From assembly GCF_022045235.1 (NCBI RefSeq), contig NW_027266319.1:35774001-35838000 (forward strand): DNA of 64,000 nt, read 5' to 3'. Origin of the DNA: Haliotis cracherodii (Eukaryota). Numbering within the stretch: the stretch's first letter is position 1; every line of letters starts with the position of its first letter. The position numbers and the translations under genes are program-made. This document shows positions 23,331 through 63,118 of this stretch, one piece after another. The notes beneath the pieces are model-generated. The model made no database searches and was not told where the DNA came from. It worked only from the letters and a program-made list of their open reading frames with translations.

Positions 23331-25062
23331 TTAGAAAAAGTCCCTGGTGCCACGTGAGAGACTGGAGCTGTACTCAGCCAGGAGAGCTTCCAGGTCCTCA
23401 AGGGTGTCCTGGGGCTCCTCCAGTCTCGCCTGCTTCACAGCTCGGGGCACCTCGCTGTTGTCATCTGGGCACTTTCTCTTGCGTGAGGGCAGGGACTCCT
23501 TGCTGGGCTCAGATGTGGGTTTCTTCTTTTTCCTTAAAATGAGTTTGGTAAGATACAGATATTCCACATCATATTCATCATCAGAGTTTGGCTCACATCT
23601 GTCCACTGACTTGGCAGAATTTACACTTAATGTTGCAGCAGTGACACCACCTGACTTAGGACTCTCTGATGCTGAAACAACCTTATCCTTTAAATTCTTA
23701 ACAGGGACGGGGGATATCTTGCAACCTGTACTGGGCAAGACAGACTTTGGCTTTAAGTATGCACCACCAGCAGACAACAACTGTTCAGCAAAACTAATCT
23801 TAGGTGAAGCCTTAATGATACTATTTCTACACACAGACTTGGTGATACGGTTCCCCAGGGGTCTGCTCTGGGTTTTGATGTGCTGAGCTCCAAGAGGCCG
23901 AGGCACAAAGTAGGGCTTGCTCTCTGGCTGATGCTTGCCCATTTTCTCCTTCAGAATGCGAGGCTTTGGCTGAGGTTTTGGCCTGAACGTGCGGGGCTTG
24001 CGTTTGCAGGGCTTGAGCTCGAGTTTCTGCTTTTGATGGACATTGGGTTCTGGGCTGCTTGTTGAAGGCATGGGAGGAGTTTCAACATGGGCTATAGACT
24101 GGGGATGAGGAACTGGACTGGGTGGGTCAAGTTGGGGCAGAACACAGGAGAAGGCCTAATGGGCGATACAGTCAATTTTTATATTTCATGATTACGTAAG
24201 TACAGTGGAAGTATATCTGTACTATAAAAGCAAGTATTATTTTTTTTTTGGGTTACGTTTTATAAATCATCAAAAAAACAAGAATACTCCTGCATACCTC
24301 TGGTCTCATCAGCTCCAGGTCTAGCACTGAACTGGGCAGGCTGACAGGCAGCTGGCAGACAGGCATCATCTCCCTACTTCTACTGCAAGATGGTGGCTGG
24401 ACTGCAGAAGGCAAGGGGGTACCAGTCACAGATGACTGACCTCCAGGCTGAAGGAGTCTTGGCTGTAAGTAACCAGCATCAAGGGAGAGGTTAACAGGAT
24501 TACCAGCTGGTATCCAGATAGTGTTGTTATCTATCAGACATCTGGTCCCATCTCCCAACACCACTGTTGGCAGCCCGGTGAGCAAGCGGGTCACAGGCAC
24601 TGTAACAGTGAATAGTTTCTTAAACTGCCTACAACTACAAGATAATTCGTCATTTCGTTAATAGTGAAAACCAATATCTAACTGTTCATTAGATTTATGT
24701 CTTTTGAATCAAGTTCAGAGTGTCTGCAGGAATTCCACGAAGTCCGAAAATGTTGTGTATCATGTTCACTTTTTGTGACAGTACAACTAAAATTCCCTAA
24801 AATGTTCAGGTTACCAATCACCATCTAAAGTTATTGGAAAACTCTACAATATAACACACTGGAAATTCCAATTCCGAAAATGTAAATTGGTTATTGTGCA
24901 ATTCTGTAATAGAAGACCTTCAAACAGACAATGAAAATTGAATATGCGGTCCGGAAACATCAGCGTTTCATTGTTTTCATTGTAAACACATTAAAACAAT
25001 CACATGTTGCTTTGTCACTGGGCAAAATACAAATTTCAAATACCTGTCGTAGTGGGATTCAT
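23331..25062 (-). CDS. Uncharacterised putative nuclear protein, copy 1, 381 aa; exons 25062-25044, 24599-24298, 24155-23331
   Basis: ATG AAT CCC ACT ACG ACA G|gtattt ... ttacag|TG CCT (phase 1) ... CCA GAG|gtatgc ... cattag|GCC TTC (phase 0). 19+302+825=1146 nt, open to TAA. Splice sites are conserved in all six copies. Translates MNPTTTVPVTRLL...LEDLEALLAEYSSSLSRGTRDFF. Confidence 0.85.
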
Positions 25063-25124
25063 AGTTTTCTCCACCTCTTCAAGTCGTACACACTTTTAGA
25101 GTCGTATTTTGCACGATAAAACTG

Positions 25125-25290
25125 TAAACACTTCCAGTGATATCTCTCAAAATGGCTGACACACAGGAAAGGCTAGCTGTTGTCATGACGCCGCTACTCT
25201 AGGTAAAACCACGCATGCGTCGACTTTATGCATAACTCGGCACTTGCGTCTGCCTTACATTGTGAATAAAGATAGATCTACATCAACACT
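25125..25290. promoter_or_regulatory. Putative bidirectional promoter, copy 1
   Basis: CAAAATGGC (YY1-like, 25148), palindromes GTCATGAC (25182), ACGCATGCGT (NRF1-like, 25211) and TTATGCATAA (25226). It is locally CpG-rich and lies between two divergent gene starts. Confidence 0.55.
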
Positions 25291-25619
25291 TGGTAGCCAT
25301 CTATATAAGGTTGAAGATGGAGAATAAACGTTGTTAAATGCGAAGGTCATTCCAAGGGAAGCTACTCTAGTAGAGTTTGCTACTTGACAGAAGTTACCGT
25401 GTTTGAATGAGGATTTTATGATCGCTTGAATGAATCATTAAAAAATACTTCATGTTTGCAATGAGAGTGAGTGAGTGAGTTACTTGTGGGCCACCTGTGA
25501 CCCCTTTACAATGTTAAATAAAATACACCGACACTACATCTGTTAAGATTTAGGCACTTCATTACCATTCTATATAGTAATTAATAAACAAATTACATGA
25601 ACATATTATTTTCTCTCAG

Positions 25620-25838
25620 ATTTAGGGTGCGTTCAAGATTGGAAGTGCCACAATGGCTACTACAGGACTCAAACAGGAGTCACCCGGAAATCCTTATCTT
25701 ATGCAAAATAATTCAATAGAAGGGAAGCCAATTATGTCACTGTAACATAATTCTTTAACCTTCCCCTGGCTACAATGGTTAGTACAGAAATAAAAATTGC
25801 GCCAAGGCACAGTTGCTCAACAGGAGTTTTCAAAGTGA
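25620..25838 (+). pseudogene. Truncated, nonsense-bearing copy of the first coding exon of the divergent plus-strand gene
   Basis: Acceptor ttttctctcag|, ATG at 25653 (MATTGLKQESPGNPYLMQNNSIEGKPIMSL), TAA at 25743 where copy 6 has CAA. Homology ends in the G-rich minisatellite. Confidence 0.7.
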
Positions 25839-25839
25839 G

Positions 25840-27150
25840 AAGGAAATGGAGGAGGAGTGGTAAAGGGAAGTCCATTGGTAGGGCGGAGGTAGGGGCAGGT
25901 GGGGAAATGGGGATTATTAGAGGAGGACAGATGAAAGGGGGGGTGGGGGGTACATTGGTAGGGCGGAGGTAGAGGCAGACGGGGAAATGGAGGAGGAGAG
26001 GTGAATGGAAGTACATTGTTAGGACGGGAGTAGGGGCAGGTTGTGAAATGGGGGACACTGGAGGAGGAGAGGTGAAGGGAAGTACATTGTTAGGACGGGA
26101 GTAGGGGCAGGTTGTGAAATGGGGGACATTGGAGGAGGAGAGGTGAATGAAGTACACTCGTGGGCCGGGGCTAGGGGCAGGTTGGGACATGGAGGAGAGA
26201 TGAAGGGAAGCACATTGGTGGGTCGGAGGTAGGGGCAGGTCGGGAAATTGAGGACATTGGAGGTTGAGAGGTGAAGGGAAGTACATTGGTGGGTCGGAGG
26301 TAGGGGCAGGTGGGGAAATGGAGGACATTGGAGAAGGAAAGGTGAAGTGAAGTACATTGTTAGGACGGGAGTAGGGGCAGGTTGGCAAATGGAGGACATC
26401 GGAGGTGGAGAGGTGAAGGAAAGTACACTGGTAGGTCGGAGGAAGGGGAAAGTTGGGAACTGGAGATCATTGAAGGAGGAGAGGTGAAGGGAAGCACACT
26501 GTTAAGACGGGGATAGGACCTGGTGGGGAAATGGAGGACATCGGAGGAGACAGTAAGGGATGTAACTGGTGAGATGGACGTAGGAGCAGATGGGGGGAAA
26601 GGGGAACATGGGAGTATTTGTAGAGAAGGGACGAGCGGTGGAAGGCCTGACGTAGGTGCAGGTTGGGAAACATAACGGGGAAGGTACGTCACGGAGGGGT
26701 TGAGGGAAGTACAGTGGTTGGATGGAAGTAGGAGCAAGTGGGGAAAGCAGGAGCTGGTTGAGAAATAGGAGACATGGGAGCAGGAGAGAGGAAGAAAAAG
26801 AAAAGAAAAGTGGAGGGAAACAAAGGACATGAGCGAAAGAGACAGGGGAAGGGTTGGATGATAGAGGCAGGATTAAGGCATGACGAATGGGGAAATGGAA
26901 GTTATATAGGATTAGGACAGGGTAAGGGAAGTTTTATTGGAGAACGTAGGTCGGGGCTGGTGTGGAAATTGGGACATTAGAGTAGGAGAGAGGAGTTGTA
27001 CTGCAAGGGACCGAAACTGGAGGTAGAAACTGGTCGTGAATTGATGACATGGGAGTAGCCAAGGTGAAAGGAACTATTGTGGAAATGTTGGGAAATGAGG
27101 GTCATGTGTCATAAGAGAGGATAGGTAGTAAAGTCGGAGGAAGAAGATAA
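25840..27150. repeat. G-rich ~70-71-bp minisatellite and purine-rich tail; homologues ~33563-33680 (deleted form), 40586-41740, 48913-50070, 56235-56980
   Basis: ggaggaggagaggtgaagggaagtacattg...aggggcaggttg(g/t)gaaatgggggacatt recurs at ~25989, 26060, 26131, 26260, 26330 and 26401. Confidence 0.85.
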
Positions 27151-30100
27151 GAGAAAAAAACAGATAGAAATTCTGAGGTAGTTTAGCATTGTCCTCAATG
27201 GAACAGTTTAATAATTCCTCTGTAAAGCCTTGTTAACGTATTGAGACTATTTGTGAAACCTAATGTCAGATTAACATGAGAAACCTGATATGAACAATAG
27301 GTCTTGCACATTGTGAACGACCACAGACCTCTTGGGACTTGTGCAACTAACATTGAACACTGCCACAGGTGTCTCCAGCTACATGTGATATAGCTAGGGT
27401 ATATCTAATTCAAAATTACCATACATTCTTGGTTTCAACAAAGAAAGTAAATGCACCATCATGATACTGGATTTCTAGTTCATCATTTGATTGTCTGGTT
27501 TGTTTACATGCCCCCGTGGCATGGCAAGAGTACTGCGGTGTTGGTCTCGGAAACAAGGACATACATTTCTTATGTAAATTTTGCAGGTACTACCCGTAGG
27601 GTCGGAAATGTTTACCATTTTCGTGAACACCTGGTGTCATCCATTTATAAACTTTTCATGTCTTTTTTGCCTTTACAAGCAATGGAATCTGCTTATTGCA
27701 AGGCAAGGCAAGGACGTTTGATAATTTACAACAGTGTAAAACCATACTAAATCCTCAGGTTCTGTGTTACTTTTAGTTAAAGGACGAAAAATGTAAATTG
27801 TGCAAGGTAATGACATTATGTCCGTCGTGTTATATCATAAACTGGTCATAAAACCTTTTCGGATTTCATATGTTAGAAAAAGGAATTTCTTAGTTATCAT
27901 ATGACACATTCTCTTAATAGCTGAGAGAACGTCCCTTCAAATAAACGAGTTAAATTTATACTGTGACAATGCCACATGTACATCTATATGAGGCAAATCT
28001 GTGTCCCAACCGTGTATTACTCGTGAAGAAATATAAGATATACAAAATATATACTTGCTATATAAATGCATGTGTCATCAGTACTCATCAGGGTGACCCA
28101 CCTTTTGTGTCAAGATCATGAAACATTTACCATTCACCCATGCTTGTCTTTAGAATGTGTTAGTGTCAATGGCTGCTAGTTGTAAAAAGAGATCTATGGA
28201 GGACCAGCTATGACATGCATATCATATCAACTTATGATCAGTGCTCATGAGAGTAACACCTTTTGGTTTCCATTTTAGAAAACCTTCACCTGTTACCCAT
28301 TCTTGTCTTAGGAATGTGTTAGGTCAAATCAGCTCCTAGCTATGATTATTACTTGATGGAGGACCAGCTGTGACCTGGTTCGTTGTGTGTCATCATGGTT
28401 TGCCTGGCCCAGACTGGATTACCTTACATGCCACCACAATACAGCTGTAAGATTACCCATTTCTTCAATCACTCACCCATTGGTTTGTTTACCATAACAT
28501 GTTCCATGTGTGTATTGCTGCATTCAGAGAAACAACTGAGGTTATAAAGTATAATACCGATGTATCATGTCTATTGGTTTGGAAAATGATACAGGTACTC
28601 ACTCACATCTTACCAAGTGTGTTCCACATTTGTTTTACTCCCATCAGAGGAATCCATTCTCACCTTGACAGTCAAAATTAAAGCATTTCTGAGCTTTTGA
28701 ATGAGAAAATATCAAACTTCCGTCTCAGTGGACATATTGTATGTTGTCCCCTGTCACTATATTGTGGCAATATTGCCAGTGTGACGTAAACGTTTAACTC
28801 AATATCAGACACAGTAATAAAAGCAACTGCCCACATGTTCTCTTAACATCTGGTGCAAAGTATATGACAATTAATCTAAGTTAAATTAAAATTTGATATT
28901 TCCGGGAGTAAAAGCATTTTCAGTCACGAGTGATGAATAAACATCTCAAAGTCATATATTTGTTGGTTTCAAGAGTCTGCCAACCCCCTTTTGGTATGCT
29001 GATGCCCATATTGCAATGTTGAAAATGATATTTCGTCTTTCTTTTCTTGCAAGGACTGACAATTCTATAATAGATTTGGCTCTTAGCTAATGAGCTTACT
29101 CATGGGCCATGCATCGTATGTGAATATACCAATTTAATTTACTTGCATCAGCTGTGAACACTGATATTACTCAAGAATCACAAATGTGACATTAATATTG
29201 TTGCAATTTATGGTTCAAGTTAAATTGCTCTCGTCAAGCATTGTTTGTGCAACAATAAGGGTTAAAATCACAGAATATAACAGTGACTTGTCGTTTAAGA
29301 TACATGCTGATACTTCATGACAATTTACAACCTTGTTCATTTACAACAGTCATACACACTGAGTGACATCACCAAGACAATGCTGTTAGCTATCTATAAT
29401 TGGTTACTGAGATACCTTTTGCGATGCTTAGCAATGTACTTTCACTCAAATTGTACCTCTACTTTAACAAACCACACAATTCAACTTCAGTTGTTAAAAT
29501 AAAACATAACTACTACTTAGACTGCAAAGTGATATTTTATTATGAAACCATTGTAGACACAAGTTAGAAACAAGCACGTTTTTCAGTTACATACTAAATA
29601 AACGGCCTCCAACCTCCCCTCACAGCCGTCCCTTTCCTCACTTCACATACACTTATTAAACTGTACAGTGACATGTTTCCACTGTATATCTGTCATTACT
29701 TGATAGTTGAGCGAATATGTAGATGGTTCACAGAGAAAATAAAGGAAAGAGTAGGATTGTAGAGACAACATTAAGACAAGAGATAATACAAGACAGGAAA
29801 CTGTAGTTTAGTAGAGGGAACATTAAGATAATAGCTAGTACAAGAGTAGGAAAGTAGGATAGGAGAGACAACAATAAGATAGTAGATAGTACAAGGCAGG
29901 AAAGGGTAGGATAGTGGAGAGCAGAAAAATTAAGATAGCAAATGGTACAAGACAGGGGTAGAGTAGGACAGGAGAGACAACAATAAGATAGTAGATAGAA
30001 CAAAATACCAAAGAGTAACAAAGTAGAGAGACAGCACTAGGATAGCAGATAGTAGAAAAATTGGGATGGTACAGAGTGGGGTAGCAATGGTTGGTACTGA

Positions 30101-30567
30101 GAAATGTTTAAAGGGAAGAACAGGATAGCAGAGAATGGGGAGATGAAGAAAATAACAAAGTACAGATTTGAAGGAAAGCACAAATAATGATTGAGTATGA
30201 TAGTAGTGTAGTGTAGGACTGTACTTTGGCTAGTGTAGGGCAGTTAGGATAGTGAATGACTGGAGAGTGCATATAAGTTTGGCAGTACACAGTAGGGTAG
30301 TGTTGGACAGTTATTGAGAGGATAGTGTAGGTCAGTAGAGAGTAGGTTAGTGTAGGCCAATACAGTGCAGTGTTGGAGAGTATCCAGACAGGAGAGATAG
30401 TAGGATAGATTAGGTAAGTATAGAGCAGGGTAGTAGTGTATGTATGACCGAAGAATAGTTTTGGATAGAATAGGATATTACTGAAGAGGGCAGAGTACGT
30501 CTGTACATGGTTGGGTGGTTTAAGACAGTAGAAAGTAAAGAAGAGAATGACAATGCACGGTACAGTA

Positions 30568-30749
30568 GGAGTGAGTGAGTGAGTGAGTGAATGTGTATTG
30601 TTTTCCGGAGCTTTTAGCAATATTCCAGCAATATCACGGCGGGGGACAACCAGAAATGGGCTTCAGACACTGTACACATGTCAGGATTCGAACCCAGGTC
30701 TTCGGGGTCACAAGCAAAAGCTTTAACCACTAGGCAACCAGACTGCCCC
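30568..30749 (-). mobile_element. tRNA-derived SINE, full length
   Basis: Minus strand reads GGGGCAGTCTGGTTGCCTAGTGGTTAAAGC (A-box region)...GGGTTCGAATCC (B box)...GATATTGCTGGAATATTGCTAAAAGC...(ACTC)n tail. Confidence 0.88.
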
Positions 30750-31100: not shown

Positions 31101-32848
31101 TTAGAAAAAGTCCCTGGTGCCACATGAGAGACTGGAGCTGTACTCAGCCAGGAGAGCTTCCAGGTCCTCAAGAGTGTCCTGGGGCTCCTCCAGTCTCGCC
31201 TGCTTCACAGCTTGGGGCACCTCGCTGTTGTCATCTGGGCACTTTCTCTTGCGTGAGAGAAGGGACTCCTTGCTAGGCTCAGATGTGGGTTTCTTCTTTT
31301 TCCTTAAAATGAGTTTGGTAAGATACAGATATTCCACATCATATTCATCATCAGAGTTTGGCTCACATCTGTCCACTGACTTGGCAGAATTTACACTTAA
31401 TGTTGCAGCAGTGACACCACCTGACTTAGGACTCTCTGGTGCTGAAACAACCTTATCCTTTACATTCTTAACAGGGACAGGGGATATCTTGCAACCTGTA
31501 CTGGGCAAGACAGACTTTGGCTTTAAGTATGCACCATCAGCAGACAACAACTGTTCAGCAAAACTAATCTTAGGTGAGGCCTTAATGATACTATTTCTAC
31601 CCGCAGACTTGGTGATACGGTTCCCCAGGGGTCTGCTCTGGGTTTTGATGTGCTGAGCTCCAAGAGGCTGAGGCACAAAGTAGGGCTTGCTCTCTGGCTG
31701 ATGCTTGCTCATTTTCTCCTTCAGAATGCGAGGCTTTGGCTGAGGTTTTGGCCTGAACGTGCGGGGATTGCGTTTGCAGGGCTTGAGCTCGTGTTTCTGC
31801 TTTTGATGGACATTGGGTTCTGGGTTGCTTGTTGAAGGCATGGGAGGAGTTTCAACATGGGCTATAGACTGGGGATGAGGAACTGGACTGGGTGGGTCAA
31901 GTTGGGGCAGAACACAGGAGAAGGCCTAATGGATGATACAGTCATTGTATCATTTTTATATTTCATGATTATGTAAGTACAATGAAAGTATATCTCTACT
32001 ATAAAAACAAGTATAATTATGTTTTGAGGTACGTTTTATAAATAATCAAAAAACAAGAATACTCCTGCATACCTCTGGTCTCATCAGCTCCAGGTCTAGC
32101 ACTGAACTGGGCAGGCTGACAGGCAGCTGGCAGACAGGCATCATCCCCCTACGTCTATTGCAATGTGGTAGCTGGACTGCAGGAGGCAGGGGGGTACCAG
32201 TCACAGATGACTGACCTCCAGGCTGAAGGAGTCTTGGCTGTAAGTAACCAGCATCAAGGGAGAGGTTAACAGGATTACCAGCTGGTATCCAGATAGTGTT
32301 GTTATCTATCAGACATCTGGTCCCATCTCCCAACACCACTGCTGGCAGCCCGGGGAGCAAGCGGGTCACAGGCACTGTAACAGTGAATAGTTTCCTAAAC
32401 TGCCTACATCTACAAGATAATTCGTCATTTCGTTAATAGTGAAAACCAATATCTAACTGTTCATTAGAATTATGTCTTTTGAAAACAAGTTTAGCGTGTC
32501 TGCAGGAATTCCACGAAGTCGAAAATGTTGTGTATCATGTTCACTTTTTGTTCACTTCATGTTCACTAGAAAGTAAAATTCCCTAAAATGTTCAGGTTAC
32601 CAATCACCATCTAAAGTTATTGGGAAACTCTACAATATAACACACTGGAAATTCCAATTCCCAAAATGTAAATTGGTTATTGTGCAATTCTGTTATAGTA
32701 GACCTTCATACAGACAATGAAAATTGAATATGCGGTCCGGAAACATCAGCGTTTCATTGTTTTCATTGTAAACACATTAAAACAATCACATGTTGCTTTG
32801 TCACTAGGCAAAATACAAATTTCAAATACCTGTCGTAGTGGGATTCAT
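31101..32848 (-). CDS. Uncharacterised putative nuclear protein, copy 2, 381 aa; exons 32848-32830, 32374-32073, 31925-31101
   Basis: Same exon lengths and GT-AG sites as copy 1, open frame. Exon 3 is ~98% identical to copy 1. Confidence 0.85.
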
Positions 32849-36500: not shown

Positions 36501-37654
36501 AGGATGATAGCAAAGCAAAAATAAATAAATAACAGACAGTACAAGGCAGGGGAGAGCAAGATAGGAGAGACAACAATAAGATAGTATATAGTACAAGGCA
36601 GGAAAGGGTAGGATAGTGGAGAGCAGAAAAATTAAGATAGCACATGGTACAAGACAGGGGTAGAGTAGCATAGGAGAGACAACAATAAGATAGTGGATAG
36701 AACAAAATACCAAAGAATAACAAAGTAGAGAGACAGCACTAGGATAGCAGATAGTAGAAAAATTGGGATGTTACAGAGTGGGGTAGCAATGGTTGGTACT
36801 GAGAAATGTTTAAAGGGAAGAACAGGATAGCAGAGAATGGGGAGATGAAGAAAATAACAAAGTACAGATTTGAAGGAAAGCACAAATAATGATTGAGTAT
36901 GATAGTAGAGAAAAGAAATATATAGCCGACAGTACAAGGCACGGGAGAGTAGGATAGGAGAGACAACAATAAGATAGTAGATAGTACAAGGCAGGAATGA
37001 GGAGGATAGTAGAGAGAAGAAAATTAAGATAGCAAATAGTACAAGACAGGAGAGAGAGAGTAGGATAGGAGAGACAACAATAAGATACAAACAAAATACC
37101 TAATAGTAACAAAGTAGACAGACAGCACTAGGATAGTAGATAGTAGGAAAATGGAATAGTACAGAGTGGGGTAGCAGTGGTTGGTACTGAGAAATGTTTA
37201 AAGGGAAGAACAGGATAGCAGAGAAAGGGGAGAAGAAGAAAATAACAAAGTACAGATTTGAAGGAAAGCACAAATAATGAGTATGATAGTAGTGTAGTGT
37301 AGGACTGTACTTAGGCAAGTGTAGGGCAGTTAGGATAGTGAATGACTGGAGAGTGCATATAAGTTTGGCAGTACACAGTAGGGTAGTGTTGGACAGTTAT
37401 TGAGAGGATAGTGTAGGTCAGTAGAGAGTAGGTTAGTGTAGGCCAATACAGTGCAGTGTTGGAGAGTATCCAGACAGGAGAGATAGTAGGATAGATTAGG
37501 TAAGTATAGAGTAGGGTAGTAGTGTATGTATGACCGAAGAATAGTTTTGGATAGAATAGGATATTACTGAAGAGGGCAGAGTACGTCTGTACATGGTTGG
37601 GTGGTTTAAGACAGTAGAAAGTAAAGAAGAGAATGACAATGCACGGTACAGTAG

Positions 37655-38128: not shown

Positions 38129-39872
38129 TTAGAAAAAGTCCCTGGTGCCACATGAGAGACTGGAGCTGTACTCAGCCAGGAGAGCTTCCAGGTCCTCAAG
38201 AGTGTCCGGGCGCTCCTCCAGTCTCGCCTGCTTCACAGCTTGGGACACCTCGCTGTTGTCATCTGGGCACTTCCTCTTGCGTGAGGGCAGGGACTCCTTG
38301 CTAGGCTCAGATGTGGGTTTCTTCTTTTTCCTTAAAATGAGTTTGGTAAGATACAGATATTCCACATCATATTCATCATCAGAGTTTGGCTCACATCTGT
38401 CCACTGACTTGGCAGAATTTACACTTAATGTTGCAGCAGTGACACCACCTGACTTAGGACTCTCTGGTGCTGAAACAACCTTATCCTTTACATTCTTAAC
38501 AGGGACAGGGGATATCTTGCAACCTGTACTGGGCAAGACAGACTTTGGCTTTAAGTATGCACCATCAGCAGACAACAACTGTTCAGCAAAACTAATCTTA
38601 GGTGAGGCCTTAATGATACTATTTCTACCCGCAGACTTGGTGATACGGTTCCCCAGGGGTCTGCTCTGGGTTTTGATGTGCTGAGCTCCAAGAGGCTGAG
38701 GCACAAAGTAGGGCTTGCTCTCTGGCTGATGCTTGCTCACTTTCTCCTTCAGAGTGCGAGGCTTTGGCTGAGGTTTTGGCCTGAACGTGTGGGGTTTGCG
38801 TTTGCAGGGCTTGAGCTCGAGTTTCTGCTTTTGATGGACATTGGGTTCTGGGTTGCTTGTTGAAGGCATGGGAGGAGTTTCAACATGGGCTATAGACTGG
38901 GGAGGAGGAACTGGACTGGGTGGGTCAAGTTGGGGCAGAACACAGGAGAAGGCCTAATGGATGATACAGTCATTGTATCATTTTTATATTTCATGATTAT
39001 GTAAGTACAATGAAAGTATATCTCTACTATAAAAACAAGTATAATTATGGTTTGAGGTACGTTTTATAAATAGTCAAAAAACAAGAATACTCCTGCATAC
39101 CTCTGGTCTCATCAGCTCCAGGTCTAGCACTGAACTGGGCAGGCTGACAGGCAGCTGGCAGACAGGCATCATCCCCCTACGTCTATTGCAATGTGGTAGC
39201 TGGACTGCAGGAGGCAGGGGGGTACCAGTCACAGATGACTGACCTCCAGGCTGAAGGAGTCTTGGCTGTAAGTAACCAGCATCCAGGGAGAGGTTAACAG
39301 GATTACCAGCTGGTATCCAGATAGTGTTGTTATCTATCAGACATCTGGTCCCATCTCCCAACACCACTGTTGGCAGCCCGGGGAGCAAGCGGGTCACAGG
39401 CACTGTAACAGTGAATAGTTTCCTAAACTGCCTACAACTACAAGATAATTCGTCATTTCGTTAATAGTGAAAACCAATATCTAACTGTTCATTAGAATTA
39501 TGTCTTTTGAAAACAGGTTTAGCGTGTCTGCAGGAATTCCACGAAGTCGAAAATGTTGTGTATCATGTTCACTTTTTGTGACAGTACAACTAAAAAGTAA
39601 AATTCCCTAAAATGTTCAGGTTACCAATCACCATCTAAAGTTATTGGGAAACTCTACAATATAACACACTGGAAATTCAAATTCCGAAAATGTAAATTGG
39701 TTATTGTGCAATTCTGTAATAGAGGACCTTCAAACAGACAATGAAAATTGAATATGCGGTCCGGAAACATCAGCGTTTCATTCTTTTCATTGTAAACACA
39801 TTAAAACAATCACATGTTGCTTTGTCACTGGGCAAAATACAAATTTCAAATACCTGTCGTAGTGGGATTCAT
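38129..39872 (-). CDS. Uncharacterised putative nuclear protein, copy 3, 381 aa; exons 39872-39854, 39402-39101, 38953-38129
   Basis: Conserved splice sites and an open frame. Confidence 0.85.
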
Positions 39873-40428: not shown

Positions 40429-40586
40429 ATTTAGGGTGCGTTCAAGATTGGAAGTGTCACAATGGCTATTACAGGACTCAAACAGGAGTCACCCGGAAAT
40501 CCTTATCTTATGCAAAATAATTCAATAGTAGGGAAGCCAATTATGTCACTGTAACATAATTCTTTAACTTTCGCCTGGCAACAGTG
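40429..40586 (+). pseudogene. Truncated nonsense-bearing copy of the plus-strand gene exon
   Basis: ATG at 40462, TAA at 40552, truncated by the minisatellite. Confidence 0.65.
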
Positions 40587-46456: not shown

Positions 46457-48200
46457 TTAGAAAAAGTCCCTGGTGCCACATGAGAGACTGGAGCTGTACT
46501 CAGCCAGGAGAGCTTCCAGGTCCTCAAGAGTGTCCTGGCGCTCCTCCAGTCTCGCCTGCTTCACAGCTTGGGACACCTCGCTGTTGTCATCTGGGCACTT
46601 CCTCTTGCGTGAGAGCAGGGACTCCTTGCTAGGCTCAGATGTGGGTTTCTTCTTTTTCCTTAAAATGAGTTTGGTAAGATACAGATATTCCACATCATAT
46701 TCATCATCAGAGTTTGGCTCACATCTGTCCACTGACTTGGCAGAATTTACACTTAATGTTGCAGCAGTGACACCACCTGACTTAGGACTCTCTGGTGCTG
46801 AAACAACCTTATCCTTTACATTCTTAACAGGGACAGGGGATATCTTGCAACCTGTACTGGGCAAGACAGACTTTGGCTTTAAGTATGCACCATCAGCAGA
46901 CAACAACTGTTCAGCAAAACTAATCTTAGGTGAAGCCTTAATGATACTATTTCTACCCGCAGACTTGGTGATACGGTTCCCCAGGGGTCTGCTCTGGGTT
47001 TTGATGTGCTGAGCTCCAAGAGGCTGAGGCACAAAGTAGGGCTTGCTCTCTGGCTGATGCTTGCTCACTTTCTCCTTCAGAGTGCGAGGCTTTGGCTGAG
47101 GTTTTGGCCTGAACGTGCGGGGCTTGCGTTTGCAGGGCTTGAGCTCGAGTTTCTGCTTTTGATGGACATTGGGTTTTGGGTTGCTTGTTGTAGGCATGGG
47201 GGGAGTTTCAACATGGGCCATTGACTGGGGATGAGGAACTGGACTGGGTGGGTCAAGTTGGGGCAGAACACAGGAGAAGGCCTAATGGGTGATACAGTCA
47301 TTGTATCATTTTTATATTTCATGATTATGTAAGCACAATGAACGTATATCTCTACTATAAAAACAAGTATAATTATGTTTTGAGGTACGTTTTATAAATC
47401 ATCAAAAAACAAGAAAACTCCTGCATACCTCTGGTCTCATCAGCTCCAGGTCTAGCACTGAACTGGGCAGGCTGACAGGCAGCTGGCAGACAGGCATCAT
47501 CCCCCTACGTCTATTGCAATGTGGTAGCTGGACTGCAGGAGGCAGGGGGGTACCAGTCACAGATGACTGACCTCCAGGCTGAAGGAGTCTTGGCTGTAAG
47601 TAACCAGCATCCAGGGAGAGGTTAACAGGATTACCAGCTGGTATCCAGATAGTGTTGTTATCTATCAGACATCTGGTCCCATCTCCCAACACCACTGTTG
47701 GCAGCCCGGGGAGCAAGCGGGTCACAGGCACTGTAACAGTGAATAGTTTCCTAAACTGCCTACATCTACAAGATAATTCGTCATTTCGTTAATAGTGAAA
47801 ACCAATATCTAACTGTTCATTAGAATTATGTCTTTTGAAAACAAGTTTAGCGTGTCTGCAGGAATTCCACGAAGTCGAAAATGTTGTGTATCATGTTCAC
47901 TTTTTGTGACAGTACAACTAAAAAGTAAAATTCCCTAAAATGTTCAGGTTACCAATCACCATCTAAAGTTATTGGGAAACTCTACAATATAACACACTGG
48001 AAATTCCAATTCCGAAAATGTAAATTGGTTATTGTGCAATTCTGTTATAGTAGACCTTCAGACAGACAATGAAAATTGAATATGCGGTCTGGAAACATCA
48101 GCGTTTCATTCTTTGCATTGTAAACACATTAAAACAATCACATGTTGCTTTGTCACTGGGCAAAATACAAATTTCAAATACCTGTCGTAGTGGGATTCAT
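46457..48200 (-). CDS. Uncharacterised putative nuclear protein, copy 4, 381 aa; exons 48200-48182, 47730-47429, 47281-46457
   Basis: Conserved splice sites and an open frame. Confidence 0.85.
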
Positions 48201-48913: not shown

Positions 48914-51900
48914 AGGAGGAGGGGTAAAGGGAAGTCCATTGGTAGGGCGGAGGTAGGGGCAGGTGGGGAAATGGGTATTATTAGAGGAGGACAGGTGAGG
49001 GGGGTTACATTGGTAGGACGGAGGTGGGGGCAGACGGGGAAATGGAGGAGGAGAGGTGAATGGAAATACATTGTTAGGACGGGAGTAGGGGCAGGTTGGG
49101 AAATGGGGGACATTGGAGGAGGAGAGGTGAATGAAGTACACTCGTGGGCCGGGGCTAGGGGCAGGTTGGGACATGGAGGAGAGATGAAGGGAAGTACATT
49201 GGTGGGTCGGAGGTAGGGGCAGGTGGGGAAATTGAGGACATCGGAGGTTGAGAGGTGAAGGGAAGTACATTGGTGGGTCGGAGGTAGGGACAGGTCGGGA
49301 AATTGAGGACATTGGAGGTTTAGAGGTGAAGGGAAGTACATTGGTAGGACGGAGGTAGGGGCAAGTTGGGAAATGGAGATCATTGAAGGAGGAGAGGTGA
49401 AGGGAAGCACACTTTTAAGACGGGAATAGGACCTGGTGGGGAAATGGAGGACATCGGAGGAGACAGTAAGGGATGTAATTGGTGCTATGGATGTAGGAGC
49501 AGACGGGGGGAAAGGGGGACATGGGAGTATTTGTAGAGAAGGGAAGAGCGGTGGAAGGCCTGACGTAGGTGCAGGTTGGGAAACATAACGGGGTAGATAC
49601 GTCACGGAGGGGTTGAGGGAAGTACAGTGGTTGGATGGAAGTAGGAGCAAGTGGGGAAAGCAGGAGCTGGTTGAGAAATAGGAGACATGGGAGCAGGAGA
49701 AGGGAAGAAAAAGAAAAGGAAAGTGGAGGGAAACAAAGGATATGAGCGAAAGAGACAGGGGAAGGGTTGGATGATAGAGGCAGGATTAAGGCATGACGAA
49801 TGGGGAAATGGAAGTTATATAGGATTAGGACAGGGTAAGGGAAGTTTTGTTGGAGAACGGAGGTCGGGGCTGGTGTGGAAATTGGGACATTAGAGTAGGA
49901 GAGAGGAGTTGTACTGTAAGGGATTGAAACTGGGGGTAGAAACTGGTCGTGAATTGATTACATGGGAGTGGCCAAGGTGAAGGGAACGATTGTGGAAATG
50001 GTGGGAAATGAGGGTCATGTGTTATGAGAGAGGATAGGTAGTAAAGTGGGAGGAAGAAGATAAGAGAAAAAATAGATGGTGTCTCCAGCTACATGTGATA
50101 TAGCTAGGGTATATCTAATTCAAAATTACCATACATTCTTGGTTTCAACAAAGAAAGTAAATTCAAATAAACGAGTTAAATTTATACTGTGACAATGCCA
50201 CATGTACATCTATATGAGGCAAATCTGTGTCCCAAACGTGTATTACTCGTGAAGAAATATAAGATATGACAAAATATATACTTGCTATATCAATGCATGT
50301 GTCGTCAGTACTCATCAGGGTGACCCAACTTTTGTGTCCAGATCATGAAACATTTACCATTCACACATGCTTGTCTTTAGAATGTGTTAGTGTCAGTGGC
50401 TGCTAGTTGTAAAAAGTGATTTATGGAGGACCAGCTGTGACATGCATATCATATCAACTTATGATCAGTGGTCATGAGAGTAACACCTTTTGGTTTCCAT
50501 TTTAGAAAACCTTCACCTGTTACCCATTCTTTTCTTAGGAATGTGTTAGGTCAAATCAGCTCCTGGCTCTGAATATTACTTGATGGAAGACCAGCTGTGA
50601 CCTGGTTCTTTGTGTGTCATCATGGTTTGCCTGGCCCAGACTGGATTACCTTACATGCCACCACAATACAGCTGTAAGATTACCCATTTCTTCAATCACT
50701 AACCCATTGGTTTGTTTACCATAACATGTTCCATGTGTGTAATGCTGCATTCAGAGAAACAACTGAGGTTATAAAGTATAATACCGATGTATCAGGTCTA
50801 TTGGTTTGGAAAATGATACAGGTACTCACTCACATCTTACCAAGTGTGTTCCACATTTGTTTTAATCCCATCAGAGGAATCCATTCTCACCTTGACAGTC
50901 AAACTAAAGCATTTCTGAGCTTTTGAATGAGAAAATATCAAACTTCCGTCTCAGTGGACATATTGTATGTTGTCTCTTGTCACTATATTGTGGCAATATT
51001 GCCAGTGTGACGTAAACGTTTAACTCAATATCAGACACAGTAATAAAAGCAACTGCCCTCATGTTCTCTTAACATCTGGTGCAAAGTATATGACAAATAA
51101 TCTAAGTTAAATTAAAATTTGATATTTCCGGGAGTAAAAGCATTTTCAGTCACGAGTGATGCATAAACATCTCAAAGTCATATATTTGAGGGTTTAAAGA
51201 GTGTGCCAATCCCCTTTTGGTATGCTGATGCCCATATTGCAATGTTGAACAATTATATTTCGTCTTTCTTTTCATGCAAGGACTGACAATTCTATAATAG
51301 ATTTGGTTCTTAGCTAATGAGCTTATTCATGGGCTATGCATCGTATGTGAAACACCAATTTAATTTACTTGCATCAGCTGTGAACACTGATATTACTCAA
51401 GAATCACAAATGTGACATTAATATTGTTGCAATTTATGGTTCAAGTTAAATTGCTCTCGTCAAGCATTGTTTGAGCAACACAGAGGATTAAAATCACAGA
51501 ATATAATGGTGGCTTTTCGTTGAAGATACATGCTGATACTTCATGACAATTTACAACCTTGTTCATTTACAACAGTCATACACACTGAGTGACATCACCA
51601 AGACAATGCTGTTAGCTATCTATAATTGGTTACTGAGATACCTTTTGCGATGCTTAGCAATGTACTTTCAATCAAATTGTTCCTCTACTTTAACAAACCA
51701 CACAATTCAACTTCAGTTGTTAAAATAAAACATAACTACTACTTAGACTGCAAATTGATATTTTATTATGAAACCATTGTAGACATAAGTTAGAAACAAG
51801 CACATGTTTTTCAGTTACATACTAAATAAACGGCCTCCAACCTCCCCTCACAGCCGCCCCTTTCCACACTTCACATACACTTACAAAACTGTACAGTGAC

Positions 51901-53649
51901 ATGTTTCCACTGTATATTTTTCATTACTTGATAGTTGGGCGAATATTTAGATGGTTCACAGAGAAAAAAAAGGAAAGAGTAGGATTGTAGAGACAACATT
52001 AAGACAAGAGATAATACAAGACAGGAAACTGTAGTTTAGTAGAGGGAACATTAAGATAATAGCTAGTACAAGAGTAGGAAAGTAGGAAAAACATATTGAT
52101 GGTTCAAAGAACAACGCTGAAGAGACTAGGATAGTAGAGAGTAGAACAGTAAGACAGTACATTGTACAAAACAGGAAGAGAAGGATATTAGAGACAACAT
52201 TTAAGATATTAGATAGTTCAAGACAGGAAAGAGTAGGGTAGTAGTAGTAAATGGTAGATAGTACAAAGGTGGAGTGAATGGGATAGTAAAGAGGACTTTA
52301 CGATAGTTGGCAGTTCTAGGAAGGAAAGAGGATGATAGTCATGGTAGTAGAGAGAATAGAATTAGATATCAGACAGCACATGACAGGAGAGAGCAGGATA
52401 GTTGAGGTAGAAAGTAGATCGTAGATAGTACGAAGGTTGGGGAAATGGGATAGTTGAGAGGATATTAAGATAGTATGTAGTAGAAGGAAGGAAAGAGGAT
52501 GATAGCAAAGCAAAAATAAATAAATAACAGACAGTACAAGGCAGGGGAGAGCAAGATAGGAGAGACAACAATAAGATAGTATATAGTACAAGGCAGGAAA
52601 GGGTAGGATAGTGGAGAGCAGAAAAATTAAGATAGCACATGGTACAAGACAGGGGTAGAGTAGCATAGGAGAGACAACAATAAGATAGTAGATAGAACAA
52701 AATACCAAAGAATAACAAAGTAGAGAGACAGCACTAGGATAGCAGATAGTAGAAAAATTGGGATGTTACAGAGTGGGGTAGCAATGGTTGGTACTGAGAA
52801 ATGTTTAAAGGGAAGAACAGGATAGCAGAGAATGGGGAGATGAAGAAAATAACAAAGTACAGATTTGAAGGAAAGCACAAATAATGATTGAGTATGATAG
52901 TAGAGAAAAGAAATATATAGCCGACAGTACAAGGCACGGGAGAGTAGGATAGGAGAGACAACAATAAGATAGTAGATAGTACAAGGCAGGAATGAGGAGG
53001 ATAGTAGAGAGAAGAAAATTAAGATAGCAAATAGTACAAGACAGGAGAGAGAGAGTAGGATAGGAGAGACAACAATAAGATACAAACAAAATACCTAATA
53101 GTAACAAAGTAGACAGACAGCACTAGGATAGTAGATAGTAGGAAAATGGAATAGTACAGAGTGGGGTAGCAGTGGTTGGTACTGAGAAATATTTAAAGGG
53201 AAGAACAGGATAGCAGAGAAAGGGGAGAAGAAGAAAATAACAAAGTACAGATTTGAAGGAAAGCACAAATAATGAGTATGATAGTAGTGTAGTGTAGGAC
53301 TGTACTTAGGCAAGTGTAGGGCAGTTAGGATAGTGAATGACTGGAGAGTGCATATAAGTTTGGCAGTACACAGTAGGGTAGTGTTGGACAGTTATTGAGA
53401 GGATAGTGTAGGTCAGTAGAGAGTAGGTTAGTGTAGGCCAATACAGTGCAGTGTTGGAGAGTATCCAGACAGGAGAGATAGTAGGATAGATTAGGTAAGT
53501 ATAGAGTAGGGTAGTAGTGTATGTATGACCGAAGAATAGTTTTGGATAGAATAGGATATTACTGAAGAGGGCAGAGTACGTCTGTACATGGTTGGGTGGT
53601 TTAAGACAGTAGAAAGTAAAGAAGAGAATGACAATGCACGGTACAGTAG

Positions 53650-54129: not shown

Positions 54130-55849
54130 TTAGAAAAAGTCCCTGGTGCCACATGAGAGACTGGAGCTGTACTCAGCCAGGAGAGCTTCCAGGTCCTCAA
54201 GAGTGTCCTGGGGCTCCTCCAGTCTCGCCTGCTTCACAGCTTGGGGCACCTCGCTGTTGTCATCTGGGCACTTTCTCTTGCGTGAGGGCAGGGACTCCTT
54301 GCTAGGCTCAGATGTGGATTTCTTCTTTTTCCTTAAAATGAGTTTGGTAAGATACAGATATTCCACATCATATTCATCATCAGAGTTTGGCTCACATCTG
54401 TCCACTGACTTGGCAGAATGTACGCTTAATGTTGCAGCAGTGACACCACCTGACTTAGGACTCTCTGGTGCTGAAACAACCTTATCCTTTACATTCTTAA
54501 CAGGGACAGGGGATGTCTTGCAGCCTGTACTGGGCAAGACAGACTTTGGCTTTAAGTAAGCACCATCAGCTGACAACAACTGTTCACCAAAACTAGGTGA
54601 GGCCTTAATGATACTATTTCTACCCGCAGACTTGGTGATACGGTTCCCCAGGGGTCTGCTCTGGGTTTTGATGTGCTGAGCTCCAAGAGGCTGAGGCACA
54701 AAGTAGGGCTTGCTCTCTGGCTGATGCTTGCTCACTTTCTCCTTCAGAATGCGAGGCTTTGGCTGAGGTTTTGGCCTGAACGTGCGGGGCTTGCATTTGC
54801 AGGGCTTGAGCTCGAGTTCCTGCTTTTGATGGACATTGGGTTTTGGGTTGCTTGTTGTAGGCATGGGAGGAGTTTCAACATGGGCCATAGACTGGGGATG
54901 AGGAACTGGACTGGGTGGGTCAAGTTGGGGCAGAACACAGGAGAAGGCCTAATGGGCGATACAGTCATTGTATCATTTTTATATTTCATGATTATGTAAG
55001 TACATTGGAAGTATATCTCTACTATAAAAACAAGTATAATTATGTTTTGAGTTACGTTTTATAAATCATCAAAAACAAACAAGAATACTCCTGCATACCT
55101 CTGGTCTCATCAGCTCCAGGTCTAGCAATGAACTGGGCAGGCTGACAGGCAGCTGGCAGACAGGCATCATCCCCCTACGTCTATTGCAATGTGGCAGCTG
55201 GACTGCAGGAGGCAGGGGGGTACCAGTCACAGATGACTGACCTCCAGGCTGAAGGAGTCTTGGCTGTAAGTAACCAGCATCCAGGGAGAGGTTAACAGGA
55301 TTATTACCAGCTGGTATCCAGATAGTGTTGTTATCTATCAGACATCTGGTCCCATCTCCCAACATCACTGTTGGCAGCCCGGGGAGCAAGCGGGTCACAG
55401 GCACTGTAACAGTGAATAGTTTCCTAAACTGCCTACAACTACAAGATAATTCGTCATTTCGTTAATAGTGAAAACCAATATCTAACTGTTCATTAGAATT
55501 ATGTCTTTTGAAAAGAAGTTCAGCGTGTCTGCAGGAATCCCACGAAGTCGAAAATGTTGTGTATCATGTTCACTAAAGAGTAATATTCCCTTAAATGTTC
55601 AGGTTACCAATTACCATCTAAAGTTATTGGGAAACTCTACAATATAACACACTGGAAATTCCGAAAATGTAAATTGGTTATTGTGCAATTCTGTTATAGT
55701 AGACCTTCATACAGACAATGGAAATTGAATATGCGGTCCGGAAACATCAGCGTTTCAATTTTTGCATTGTAAACACATTAAAACAATCACATGTTGCTTT
55801 GTCACTGGGCAAAATACAAATTTCAAATACCTGTCGTAGTGGGATTCAT
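54130..55849 (-). CDS. Uncharacterised putative nuclear protein, copy 5, 380 aa; exons 55849-55831, 55403-55099, 54948-54130
   Basis: Open frame with a +3-nt insertion in exon 2 (AGNNPV) and a 6-nt deletion in exon 3 (KI lost). Confidence 0.85.
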
Positions 55850-55911
55850 AGTTCTCTCCACCTCTTCAAGTCGTACACACTTTTAGAGTCGTATTTTGCA
55901 CGATAAAACTG

Positions 55912-56075
55912 TGAACACTTCCAGTAATATCTCTCAAAATGGCTGACACACAGGAAGGGCTAGCTGTTGTCATGACGCCGCTACTCTAGGTAAAACCACG
56001 CATGCGTCGACTTTATGCATAACTCGACACTTCCGTCTGCCTTACATTGTGAATAAAGATAGATCTACATCAACA
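55912..56075. promoter_or_regulatory. Putative bidirectional promoter, copy 5
   Basis: Same motif cluster (ACGCATGCGT at 55998). The downstream plus-strand exon is deleted at ~56233. Confidence 0.5.
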
Positions 56076-60669: not shown

Positions 60670-60852
60670 GAGTGAGTGAGTGAGTGAGTGAGTGAGTGTA
60701 TGGCATTCCGGAGCTTTTAGCAATATTCCAGCAATATCACCGCGGGGGACAACCAGAAATGGGCTTCAGACACAGTACACATGTCAGGATTCGAACCCAG
60801 GTCTTCGGTGTCACAAGCAAAAGCTTTAACCACTAGGCTACCAGACTGCCCC
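60670..60852 (-). mobile_element. tRNA-derived SINE
   Basis: A box, B box and the longest (ACTC)n tail of the six copies. Confidence 0.88.
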
Positions 60853-61262
60853 AGACTAGTGTAAGAAAGTATGTAGCAGAGTAGTATATGAAAAAAAATA
60901 GTAGACTCGAGTAGTGTATCACATAACATGGTAGTGTTGATTAGGCCAGTACATGGTAGGGTAAGGTAGTACAGTACATAGTAGAGTAGTGTAGGATAGT
61001 ACAGAGTAGGGTGGTGTATGGCAAAACATAGTATAGTTGTGTATGACAGTGCACGGTAGAGTTGTGTCAGATAGTACATAGCAGAGTAGTGTAGGATAGT
61101 ACATAGTACAGAAGTGTAGCACAGTAGATGGTAGTGTAGTGCACAACAGTACAAAGTAGTACAAACACAATGACTGTTAGCGAAAGACATGAAGATCATA
61201 TATAAACATCAACCTAACTATACACCAATCTATACCTACCTGTTCCCTGCCCCTTACACTGT

Positions 61263-63118
61263 TTAGAAAAAGTCCCTGGTCCCACGTGAGAGACTGGAGC
61301 TGTACTCAGCCAGGAGAGCTTCCAGATCCTCAAGAGTGTCCTGGGGCTCGTCCAGTCTCGCCTGCTTTACAGCTTGGGGCACCTCGCTGTTGTCATCTGG
61401 GCACTTTCTCTTGCGTGAGGGCAGGGACTCCTTGCTGGCCTCAGATGTGGATTTCTTCTTTTTCCTTAAAATGAGTTTGGTAAGATACAGATATTCCACA
61501 TCATATTCATCATCAGAGTTTGGCTCACATCTGTCCACCGACTTGGCAGAATGTACGCTTAATGTTGCAGCAGTGACACCACCTGACTTAGGACTCTCTG
61601 GTGCTGAAACAACCTTATCCTTTACATTCTTAACAGGGACAGGGGATGTCTTGAAACCTGTACTGGGCAAGACAGACTTTGGCTTTAAGTAAGCACCATC
61701 AGCTGACAACAACTGTTCAGCAAAACTAATCTTAGCCTTAATGATACTATTTCTACCCGCAGACTTGGTGATACGGTTCCCCAGGGGTCTGCTCTGGGTT
61801 TTGATGTGCTGAGCTCCAAGAGGCTGAGGCACAAAGTAGGGCTTGCTCTCTGGTTGATGCTTGATCACTTTCTCCTTCAGAATGCGAGGCTTTGGCTGAG
61901 GTTTTGGCCTGAACGTGCGGGGCTTGCATTTGCAGGGCTTGAGCTCGAGTTTCTGCTTTTGATGGACATTGGGTTTTGGGTAGCTTGTTGAAGGCATGGG
62001 AGGAGTTTCAACATGGGCCATTGACTGGGGATGAGGAACTGGACTGGGTGGGTCAAGTTGGGGCAGAACACAGGAGAGGGCCTAATGGGCGATACAGTCA
62101 ATGTATCATTTTTATATTTCATGATTATGTAAGTACAATGGAAGTATATTTTTACTATAAAAGTAGGTATAATTATCTTTTGGGTTACGTTTTATACATC
62201 ATCAAAAAAACCAAGAATACTCCTGAATACCTCTGGTCTCATCAGCTCCAGGTCTAGCACTGAGCTGGGCAGGCTGACAGGCAGCTGGCAGACAGGCATC
62301 ATCTCCCTACTTCTACTGCAAGGTGGTAGCTGGACTGCAGAAGGCAGGGGGGTACCAGTCACAGATGACTGACCTCCAGGCTGAAGGAGTCTTGGCTGTA
62401 GGTAACCAACATCCAGGGAGAGGTTAACAGGGTTACCAGCTGGTATCCAAATAGTGTTGTTATCTATCAGACATCTGGTCCCATCTCCCATCACCACTGC
62501 TGGCAACCCGGGAGGCAAGTGGGTCACAGGCACTGTAACAGTGAATAGTTTCAGCGTTAGAAATTGGCACTGGTCCTGTAGTCCCTACCAAACTGCCGAA
62601 TAGTAAAGGACTAGTAGAAATTGGCCCATTTTAAGGGTTTTGCTATATGTTATCATTATTAGGACTAGTGGACAAAAACTGTTAGTTTCTAACCCTGAGT
62701 TTACTAACTGCCTACAAATTATTTCGTCATTTCGATAAGAATGATAACAAATATCTAACTGTTCATTAGATTTAAAGCTTTTGAAAAGAAGTTCAGCGTG
62801 TCTGCAGGAAGTCAACGAAGTCGAAAATGTGTATCATGTTCACTTTCATGTACAACTAAACTTTCCTAAAATATTCAGGTTACTAATCACCATCTAAAGT
62901 TATAGTGAAACACACTGGAAATTCCAATTCCGAAAATGTAAATTGGTTATTGTGCAATTCTATAATAGAAGACGTTCATACAGACAATGAAAATTGAATA
63001 TGCGGTCCGGAAACATCAGCGTTTCATTCTTTGCATTGTAAACACATTAAAACAATCACATGTTGCTTTGTCACTGGGCAAAATACAAATTTCAAATACC
63101 TGTCGTAGTGGGATTCAT
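61263..63118 (-). CDS. Uncharacterised putative nuclear protein, copy 6, 379 aa; exons 63118-63100, 62532-62231, 62081-61263
   Basis: Open frame, 6-nt deletion (SP lost), MITE in intron 1, exon-2 donor GAG|gtattc. Confidence 0.85.
62552..62697. mobile_element. 146-bp non-autonomous DNA transposon (MITE) with ~13-bp TIRs and a 5-bp TSD
   Basis: Starts CAGCGTTAGAAAT and ends GTTTCTAACCCTG (reverse complement CAGGGTTAGAAAC, 11/13 match). It is flanked by AGTTT on both sides. The other five units show the empty site (atagtttcctaaactg in copies 2-5, atagtttcttaaactg in copy 1). Confidence 0.88.

Follow-up and report, generated by a model that had tools for sequence, protein, structure and literature searches.

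One array of an abalone-restricted tandem gene family in Haliotis cracherodii, expressed and likely encoding a disordered nuclear protein

Introduction

Gene-bearing macrosatellites such as D4Z4/DUX4, CT47, GAGE, TSPY and RS447/USP17 are built from a multi-kb tandem unit that carries one open reading frame (ORF) each and has satellite DNA adjoining it, and their copies are kept alike within a species. In molluscs, the SPILE (Spiralian TALE homeobox) clusters are lineage-specific tandem genes for nuclear factors, and SPILE-type genes are reportedly used in early cleavage stages. Here, we describe an array of six three-exon genes in the black abalone, Haliotis cracherodii, that resembles the former in its multi-kb unit, its single ORF per unit and its adjoining satellite, and the latter in being a lineage-specific tandem set of genes, putatively for a nuclear protein, in a mollusc. 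The array lies in a stretch of 64,000 nucleotides (the window), positions 35774001-35838000 of contig NW_027266319.1 (C56 hereafter) of the 1.18-Gb genome. Our results indicate that it belongs to a genuine, expressed and selected tandem gene family, restricted to one genus.

An earlier reading of the window from its letters alone (the sequence-only reading) had likened the array to D4Z4/DUX4. This likeness proved superficial, as it extends to a tandem unit with an ORF and no further. DUX4 has a double homeodomain, whereas the abalone protein has neither a homeodomain nor any other Pfam family, and the lack of a homeodomain also sets it apart from the SPILE proteins. The DUX4 ORF is intronless and retrogene-like, while the abalone gene has two GT-AG introns and three coding exons. 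D4Z4 consists of tens of units that are more than 95% alike and vary in copy number; the black abalone array in its one assembly has six units with 88-97% identity, and the red abalone, H. rufescens, has at least five copies. The abalone units are 3-10% diverged and the array lies mid-contig, at 35.8 Mb of 70.4 Mb. Finally, D4Z4/DUX4 is silenced, whereas transcripts of the abalone genes occur in many runs.

Results

Six intact three-exon genes in head-to-tail units

In each of the six copies (c1 to c6, Table 1), 19 coding nt of exon 1, 302-305 nt of exon 2 and 819-825 nt of exon 3 join in phase into an ORF of 379-381 amino acids (aa). GT/AG is present at every exon boundary in 6/6 copies, and none contains an internal stop. 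These models bear out the sequence-only reading in its central claim of six intact tandem copies of one gene spliced in phase. However, the 19 nt do not form the micro-exon that it proposed, because contig depth from public runs extends about 100-150 nt upstream of the c1 ATG (bins 25050-25217); they are just the coding portion at the end of an ordinary exon 1 that also has a 5' untranslated region (UTR).

Self-BLAST of the window revealed a tandem repeat that starts at about 23.0 kb and continues up to the end of the window; offsets are 7.0-8.3 kb and identities 88-97%. Together with the gene models, it confirmed a multi-kb unit with one intact spliced gene each. The six units are arranged head to tail with one minus-strand gene per unit, and the successive ATGs are 7786, 7024, 8328, 7649 and 7269 bp apart. 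A head-to-tail repeat of units larger than 1 kb, each carrying an identically oriented copy of one gene, is what generically characterizes a tandemly arrayed gene cluster or macrosatellite. Over long stretches, alternate units are the most alike (offsets 14.6-16.0 kb, identity 95.6-96.9%), which suggests that part of the array growth took place in two-unit steps of about 15-16 kb.

The family genes are transcribed and spliced

Contigs from four public runs (X1, X2, X3 and X6; four studies, three organism labels) were aligned to positions 22950-25450, which cover c1. The joint across intron 1 (24599->25044) is present in X2, X3 and X6, and that across intron 2 (24154/5->24297/8) in X1 and X3. 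Both are base-exact as predicted, with GT..AG on the minus strand. Depth is 130-1240 in exon bins vs 8-44 in intron 1 bins, that is, 10-80 times higher in exons, and the contigs are therefore RNA-like and unlike DNA. Moreover, loose ends at the exon 2 acceptor bear the slightly different exon 1 of the paralogues on contig C21, indicating that other arrays are also expressed and spliced. Gene parts were found in 14 presumed-RNA runs from eight studies with 6 organism labels. Spliced transcripts, on which the sequence-only reading depended, are present, both predicted introns being removed in run contigs. These data demonstrate that the family genes are transcribed and spliced as modelled. A processed retrocopy as the source is excluded indirectly, since 31/31 genomic matches sit within intron-bearing arrays.

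The reading frame is kept by selection

Within the array, coding sequences diverge by 1-4% vs 3-10% for introns, so that coding divergence is about half of that of the introns. The coding sequences contain three indel events (3, 6 and 6 nt), all multiples of 3, compared with 16 events in 751 intron columns, 13 of which are not multiples of 3. Indels at the rate seen in introns should have produced about 20 frameshifts over 6 x 1146 nt, but none was observed (P of none about 2e-9). With substitutions at the intron rate, the copies would have escaped a stop with a probability of 0.008. The in-frame indels and the lack of stops noticed in the sequence-only reading were thus corroborated, and, when indels are taken into account, neutrality would not predict six intact frames. 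Selection has kept the reading frame.

Between arrays, where synonymous divergence (dS) is 0.13-0.19, the ratio of non-synonymous to synonymous rates (dN/dS, omega) is 0.50-0.66, and counting over the family tree yielded 418 non-synonymous and 201 synonymous changes, with an omega of 0.65. Residues 301-360 have an omega of 0.16-0.22 (P<=4e-4), and the C-terminal 85 residues are under clear purifying selection, with an omega of about 0.2. The N-terminus and the basic centre each have an omega of about 0.5, and two linker windows reach 1.3 and 2.0, neither value being significant (P=0.25 and P=0.056, respectively). This pattern shows constraint on the C-terminal third and the basic centre, with linkers that drift almost freely.

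The window holds one of several arrays in the genome

Exon 3 has 31 matches in the genome, which fall into five local clusters on three contigs, C56, C21 and C9 (Table 1). None of these contigs carries a SIR2 exon, and a link of the family to an orphan array next to SIRT6 was therefore rejected. The locus is not a lone array, but one of four or five arrays, which together comprise 29 copies in the genome. Gene models were built for these 29 copies: 23 are intact with all splice sites and 6 are broken by 1-nt insertions, stops or deletions, the broken ones falling within two of the clusters. Three of the 6 broken copies, L012 (C21:4672000-4675167), L019 (C9:29152000-29155184) and L020 (C9:29164350-29167537), are disrupted by one extra C each in the same exon 2 homopolymer. 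This could be a mutational hot spot or an assembly homopolymer error; in the latter case, 26/29 copies would be intact.

In the protein tree, the C56 array, the C21 copies at 4.32-4.39 Mb and those at 4.65-4.69 Mb each form a clade, and the C9 copies form two groups. The C56 array and an H. rufescens array on a 13.8-Mb scaffold constitute one clade (100/99), and the locus therefore predates the split of the two species. The four red abalone copies in the tree are monophyletic and almost identical, and the black abalone copies of the clade are 1-5% apart; the red abalone copies have been homogenised or re-amplified within the species. The whole cassette, comprising the gene, an upstream GA-rich minisatellite of about 70 bp and a downstream 25/52-bp minisatellite, is collinear between C56 and C21 at about 79% identity and can be recognised in part in C9, where the units measure 12-13 kb. 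This collinearity indicates that the family spread by copying of the whole cassette, followed by local amplification. On C21 (4362302-4387312; copies L005-L008), pairs separated by 16,126 bp show little or no difference: L005 is identical to L007, and L006 and L008 are each 0.0027 from their fork. This looks like a very recent two-unit duplication, with the step size suggested in the window.

Relatives are confined to Haliotis

A word-based protein search with exon 3 gave ten matches, all from Haliotis (H. rufescens, H. cracherodii, H. rubra and H. asinina). Further, a profile hidden Markov model of the ten homologues searched against 1.84 billion cluster representatives retrieved five clusters, four of them Haliotis-named and the fifth, P0012, an N-terminal fragment of the family. 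By these searches, the family is apparently found only in Haliotis.

The protein is not unrecognised, since RefSeq already lists the H. rufescens 'uncharacterized protein LOC125383238' (XP_048257501.1), with 380 aa, three exons and the start MNPTTTVPV, and its siblings LOC125383239 and LOC124117387. Exon 3 of c1 is 93% identical to the LOC125383238 family over 100% of its length (E=2.5e-156). The common exon structure, N-terminus (MNPTTTVPVTRL) and C-terminus (TRDFF) place the black abalone genes in this family. The LOC125383238 models come from the orthologous red abalone array on the 13.8-Mb scaffold; they are computer predictions without any description. In the literature, the LOC identifiers occur in no paper, and searches under abalone, orphan and tandem found nothing on the family. 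Paralogues in Haliotis bear the automatic names 'titin-like', 'TonB-like', 'EspI-like' and 'dao-5-like', which are compositional accidents.

Two annotated relatives deserve mention. P0016 (244 aa) is the sole member of the 90% cluster on C56, and its size is that of an ORF from an internal Met of exon 3 in unit 5 or 6. Because this lone cluster member on the contig is a 244-aa piece, the black abalone annotation appears to miss the full 379-381-aa models. P0013 of H. rubra (XP_046563378.1) is a model in which the C-terminal portion of a pogo/Tigger DDE_1 transposase (E=1e-7) is joined to family exon 2 and in which the alternative acceptor of exon 3 described below is used; it stems either from annotation error or from a transcript that is chimeric with a nearby transposon.

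The protein is probably disordered and probably nuclear

No Pfam family scored above noise with exons 2 and 3 or with the full-length homologues P0001, P0004 and P0008 (DUF6099, E=0.27; zf-C3HC, E=0.23), and a sequence profile search of PDB gave 0 matches at E<=10. AlphaFold2 with a 10-sequence alignment returned a mean pLDDT (predicted local distance difference test score) of 43.5, with three strands at 18-35 and helices at 228-235, 303-315 and 358-372. This prediction suggests that the protein is probably mostly disordered. Matches in the ESM Atlas were rejected: the best reached 0.79 for the whole protein and 0.76 for the C-terminal part, within the range of shuffled sequences. The sequence-only reading was right to describe the protein as basic and of low complexity, with no recognisable folded domain and with a C-terminal helix that is acidic, and no match to a known family or transposon ORF emerged from the Pfam, PDB or profile searches.

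The alignment of the ten homologues displays several conserved pieces. At the N-terminus is GLPTVVMGDGTRCLxDNNTIWIPAGNPV. Further pieces are LDLxLMRPEAFSCVLPQLD; the basic Pro/Lys stretch ELKPCKRKPRTFRPKPQPKPRIPKEK with SKPYFVPQPLGAKHIK after it; SDDEYDVEYLYLTKLILRKK[KR]K, which is first acidic and then helical; SRKRKCPDDNSEV; and an acidic helix, QDTLEDLEALLAEYSSSL, which contains LxxLL and is followed by the end TRDFF. The basic clusters PCKRKPR, RKK[KR]K and SRKRK vary little or not at all, and at the level of pattern they fit the K/R type of a monopartite classical nuclear localisation signal (NLS). The protein is thus probably nuclear. The label 'nuclear regulator' in the sequence-only reading was nevertheless an overstatement, its basis being the invariant basic clusters and the predicted helices.

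A TATA-less promoter and an alternative acceptor

We aligned the 250 nt upstream of the ATG from 11 copies of four arrays. The blocks ACGGAAGTG, CGCATGCG, GCGTCATGAC and CCTTCCTGTGTGTCAGCCATTTTGAGAGAT are kept in all arrays, and no TATA box was found in these 250 nt. The blocks are better conserved than synonymous sites, the arrays compared differing by a dS of 0.13-0.19. We take them to resemble ETS, NRF1, CRE/ATF and YY1 sites. Such a set is typical of broadly expressed or bidirectional promoters, and reading the promoter as one of the broad type is in line with the gene parts in 14 presumed-RNA runs.

Exon 3 contains an alternative acceptor (Table 1). Its use is evident from the joint 23531->24297 in X3 and from loose ends, CTGGTCTCAT, at 23534 in X1, X2 and X6. 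Joining of the exon 2 donor to this acceptor shifts the frame and ends translation after EKEETHI, giving a 114-aa product with the N-terminal part only, made up of 107 N-terminal aa and the tail EKEETHI. The acceptor is conserved in 27/29 genomic copies, and the same site occurs in units 2-6 (tail EKEETHI/C). The H. rubra model P0013 has the same C-terminal end as this short isoform. The short isoform could be a natural competitor of the full protein, or noise that persists in a highly constrained coding stretch.

Repeats and a neighbouring ORF

The satellite next to the array, which the sequence-only reading had noticed, is real and occupies 2231-18387 with a 21/42-bp GA-rich unit. It shows strong strand asymmetry, with a GC skew of about +0.85 for its 21-bp GA-rich unit. 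The satellite unit and the 71-bp minisatellite within the gene units have GGGAAGTA and GGAGG words in common, and the 16-kb satellite may derive from this minisatellite. A 70-bp counterpart of the minisatellite is present in the array of contig C21. Just downstream of c1, at 22950-23033, contig depth is about 4000-4350 in 4/4 runs, compared with tens to hundreds elsewhere, and marks either a repeat in very high copy number or an element that is abundantly transcribed. An Rfam scan of the window found no family.

About 600 bp upstream of each gene, on the plus strand and with the promoter region in common, lie counterparts of a short ORF that is open in unit 6. In unit 1, a stop interrupts the ORF after 30 codons; units 2-4 have lost its ATGGCTAC start sequence, and in unit 5 other sequence takes its place. 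A Pfam search gave no match to it, and no clear exons were found in the 20 kb beyond the window. What the sequence-only reading called a 'co-duplicated neighbour exon' is a short plus-strand ORF only, degenerate or absent in units 1-5, and its status as an exon is not borne out.

Table 1 Features of the window and clusters of the family in the genome. Positions are those of the window unless a contig is named; for each gene copy, the higher coordinate is the first base of its ATG, and exon 1 is given by its coding part.
Feature	Position	Strand	Details
Copy c1, coding sequence	23331..25062	-	Exon 1 coding 25044-25062, exon 2 24298-24599, exon 3 23331-24155 including stop; 381 aa
Copy c2	31101..32848	-	Exons 32830-32848, 32073-32374, 31101-31925; 381 aa
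Copy c3	38129..39872	-	Exons 39854-39872, 39101-39402, 38129-38953; 381 aa
Copy c4	46457..48200	-	Exons 48182-48200, 47429-47730, 46457-47281; 381 aa
Copy c5	54130..55849	-	Exons 55831-55849, 55099-55403, 54130-54948; 380 aa; +3 nt in exon 2, -6 nt in exon 3
Copy c6, most diverged	61263..63118	-	Exons 63100-63118, 62231-62532, 61263-62081; 379 aa
5' UTR and TATA-less promoter of c1	25063..25300	-	11-copy alignment from four arrays; contig depth upstream of ATG
Alternative acceptor within exon 3 of c1	23532..23534	-	AG 23534-23533, exon resumes at 23532
Gene-less partial unit, left array edge	20234..23047		Matches parts of full units downstream of the gene (self-BLAST)
16-kb GA-rich satellite	2231..18387		21/42/63-bp unit (AAGTAGGGAGGATGGAGAGGG); abuts the array
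71-bp GA-rich minisatellite	25981..26549; also 40585-41134, 49036-49462		First about 0.9 kb upstream of c1 promoter
52-bp minisatellite	29750..30003; also 21980-22313, 44337-44590		Downstream of the gene
Longer 388-bp repeats	36518-37280, 44442-45571, 52513-53275		
Divergent 79-aa ORF upstream of c6	63712..63951	+	Open in unit 6; MATTGIKRESSENPYLMQNN...
C56 cluster	Window array		6 copies
C21 cluster	C21, 4.32-4.39 Mb		8 copies
C21 cluster	C21, 4.65-4.69 Mb		4 copies + 2 broken
C9 cluster	C9, 29.09-29.18 Mb		7 copies
C9 cluster	C9, 29.77-29.78 Mb		2 copies

Discussion

We consider it likely that the locus is one array of an abalone-restricted gene family whose product is a disordered nuclear adaptor with dosage set by copy number. 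In this model, a cassette of about 7-8 kb, in which the three-exon gene is combined with a TATA-less promoter and with minisatellites private to the cassette, would have been copied head to tail, partly in two-unit steps, and also seeded to other chromosomes, leading to about 29 copies in the black abalone. The disordered protein would be imported into the nucleus via PCKRKPR, RKK[KR]K and SRKRK and act there as an adaptor. Its small N-terminal beta module, GLPTVVMGDGTRCLxDNNTIWIP, may bind one partner, and the C-terminal helices, YLYLTKLILRKK and the acidic LEDLEALLAEY with LxxLL inside, may bind others. The many copies would mainly raise dosage, and the short isoform from the internal acceptor, having the N-terminal module only, could compete with the full protein.

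Several points weigh against this interpretation. At the 76 variable coding sites observed, the probability of finding no stop is 0.11 and not significant, pairwise dN/dS among the six copies is 0.4-1.15, and the variable coding sites are spread evenly over the codon positions (27:23:26). These omega values and the even codon positions indicate weak amino-acid constraint among the six copies. As to expression, the public runs are RNA by presumption, a guess on our part, and their tissue labels are coded. Most run contigs are 90-95% like c1, and therefore expression is demonstrated for the family and for copies of the C56 and C21 types rather than for the six copies one by one. In the protein, the N-terminal LLTGLPTVVLG is fairly hydrophobic. 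Nuclear location, partner binding and the dosage role are what we infer.

A germline or early-embryo arms race, with the family as an ampliconic conflict gene (a meiotic driver or suppressor, or a factor in the silencing of transposons or viruses), seems to us rather unlikely. Mouse Slx/Sly, Drosophila Stellate/Su(Ste) and Dox, and the primate cancer-testis arrays are known examples of ampliconic conflict. The several independent arrays with 29 copies and broken copies in two clusters, the restriction to one genus, the linker windows with omega of 1.3-2.0, the homogenisation within the red abalone and the satellites that each cassette has of its own would all fit such a history. However, no window is significant for omega > 1 (best P=0.056). 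The TATA-less promoter with its ETS/NRF1/CRE/YY1-like blocks has the look of broad expression, and the gene parts in 14 presumed-RNA runs from 8 studies with 6 organism labels argue against very narrow expression. A wider version of this thought, by analogy with the DUX4, Zscan4, Slx/Sly and SPILE arrays, is that the family might be an abalone-specific, dosage-driven, fast-turnover nuclear factor of the germline or early embryo, whose amplification together with private satellites would reflect genetic conflict or lineage-specific wiring of genome activation; we regard this proposal as speculative and doubtful.

It is quite improbable that the product is instead a secreted or extracellular basic protein comparable to abalone shell matrix or gamete proteins, with the hydrophobic N-terminus (residues 12-22) as its signal peptide. 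Abalones are known for fast-evolving secreted proteins, which lends the idea some appeal. Nevertheless, the N-terminal 45 residues are among the best conserved and run into the GDGTRCLxDNNTIWIP module, unlike a signal peptide, and Pro and Gly occur inside the hydrophobic stretch in most homologues (RLPPGLPTVVMG). Moreover, several basic clusters of the NLS type are invariant, cysteines are few and the protein lacks repeats.

Still less credit is due to a young neutral duplication, in which the frames of a functionless ORF would be intact through recency or gene conversion. Within-array omega of about 1 for some pairs and the stop probability of 0.11 given the observed coding substitutions are what such a process would leave. 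It would not account for the 0 frameshifts in 6 x 1146 nt where about 20 are expected, for coding divergence at half that of introns, for frames intact in 23/29 copies at dS up to 0.19 and in four species, for the C-terminal omega of about 0.2, or for the conserved promoter and splice sites. Given the omega pattern and the preservation of the frame, we therefore reject the neutral reading. An ORF derived from a transposon and carried on a repeated mobile element, to which the pogo/Tigger DDE_1 tail fused to family exon 2 in H. rubra P0013 might point, is hardly credible, as the protein contains no transposase, reverse transcriptase, integrase or other transposable-element domain, the gene contains two introns and is preceded by a conserved promoter of the cellular type, 31/31 genomic matches lie in five local clusters with none dispersed, and the DDE_1 piece is a neighbouring insertion outside the family.

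Therefore, we favour the disordered nuclear adaptor with copy-number dosage as the likely role of the family. Taken alone, the array represents an ordinary tandem gene family. As a whole, the family is a clean example of a genus-restricted, expressed, selected and repeatedly amplified protein family without detectable relatives or fold, and it offers a tractable case for the study of gene birth, concerted evolution and dosage.

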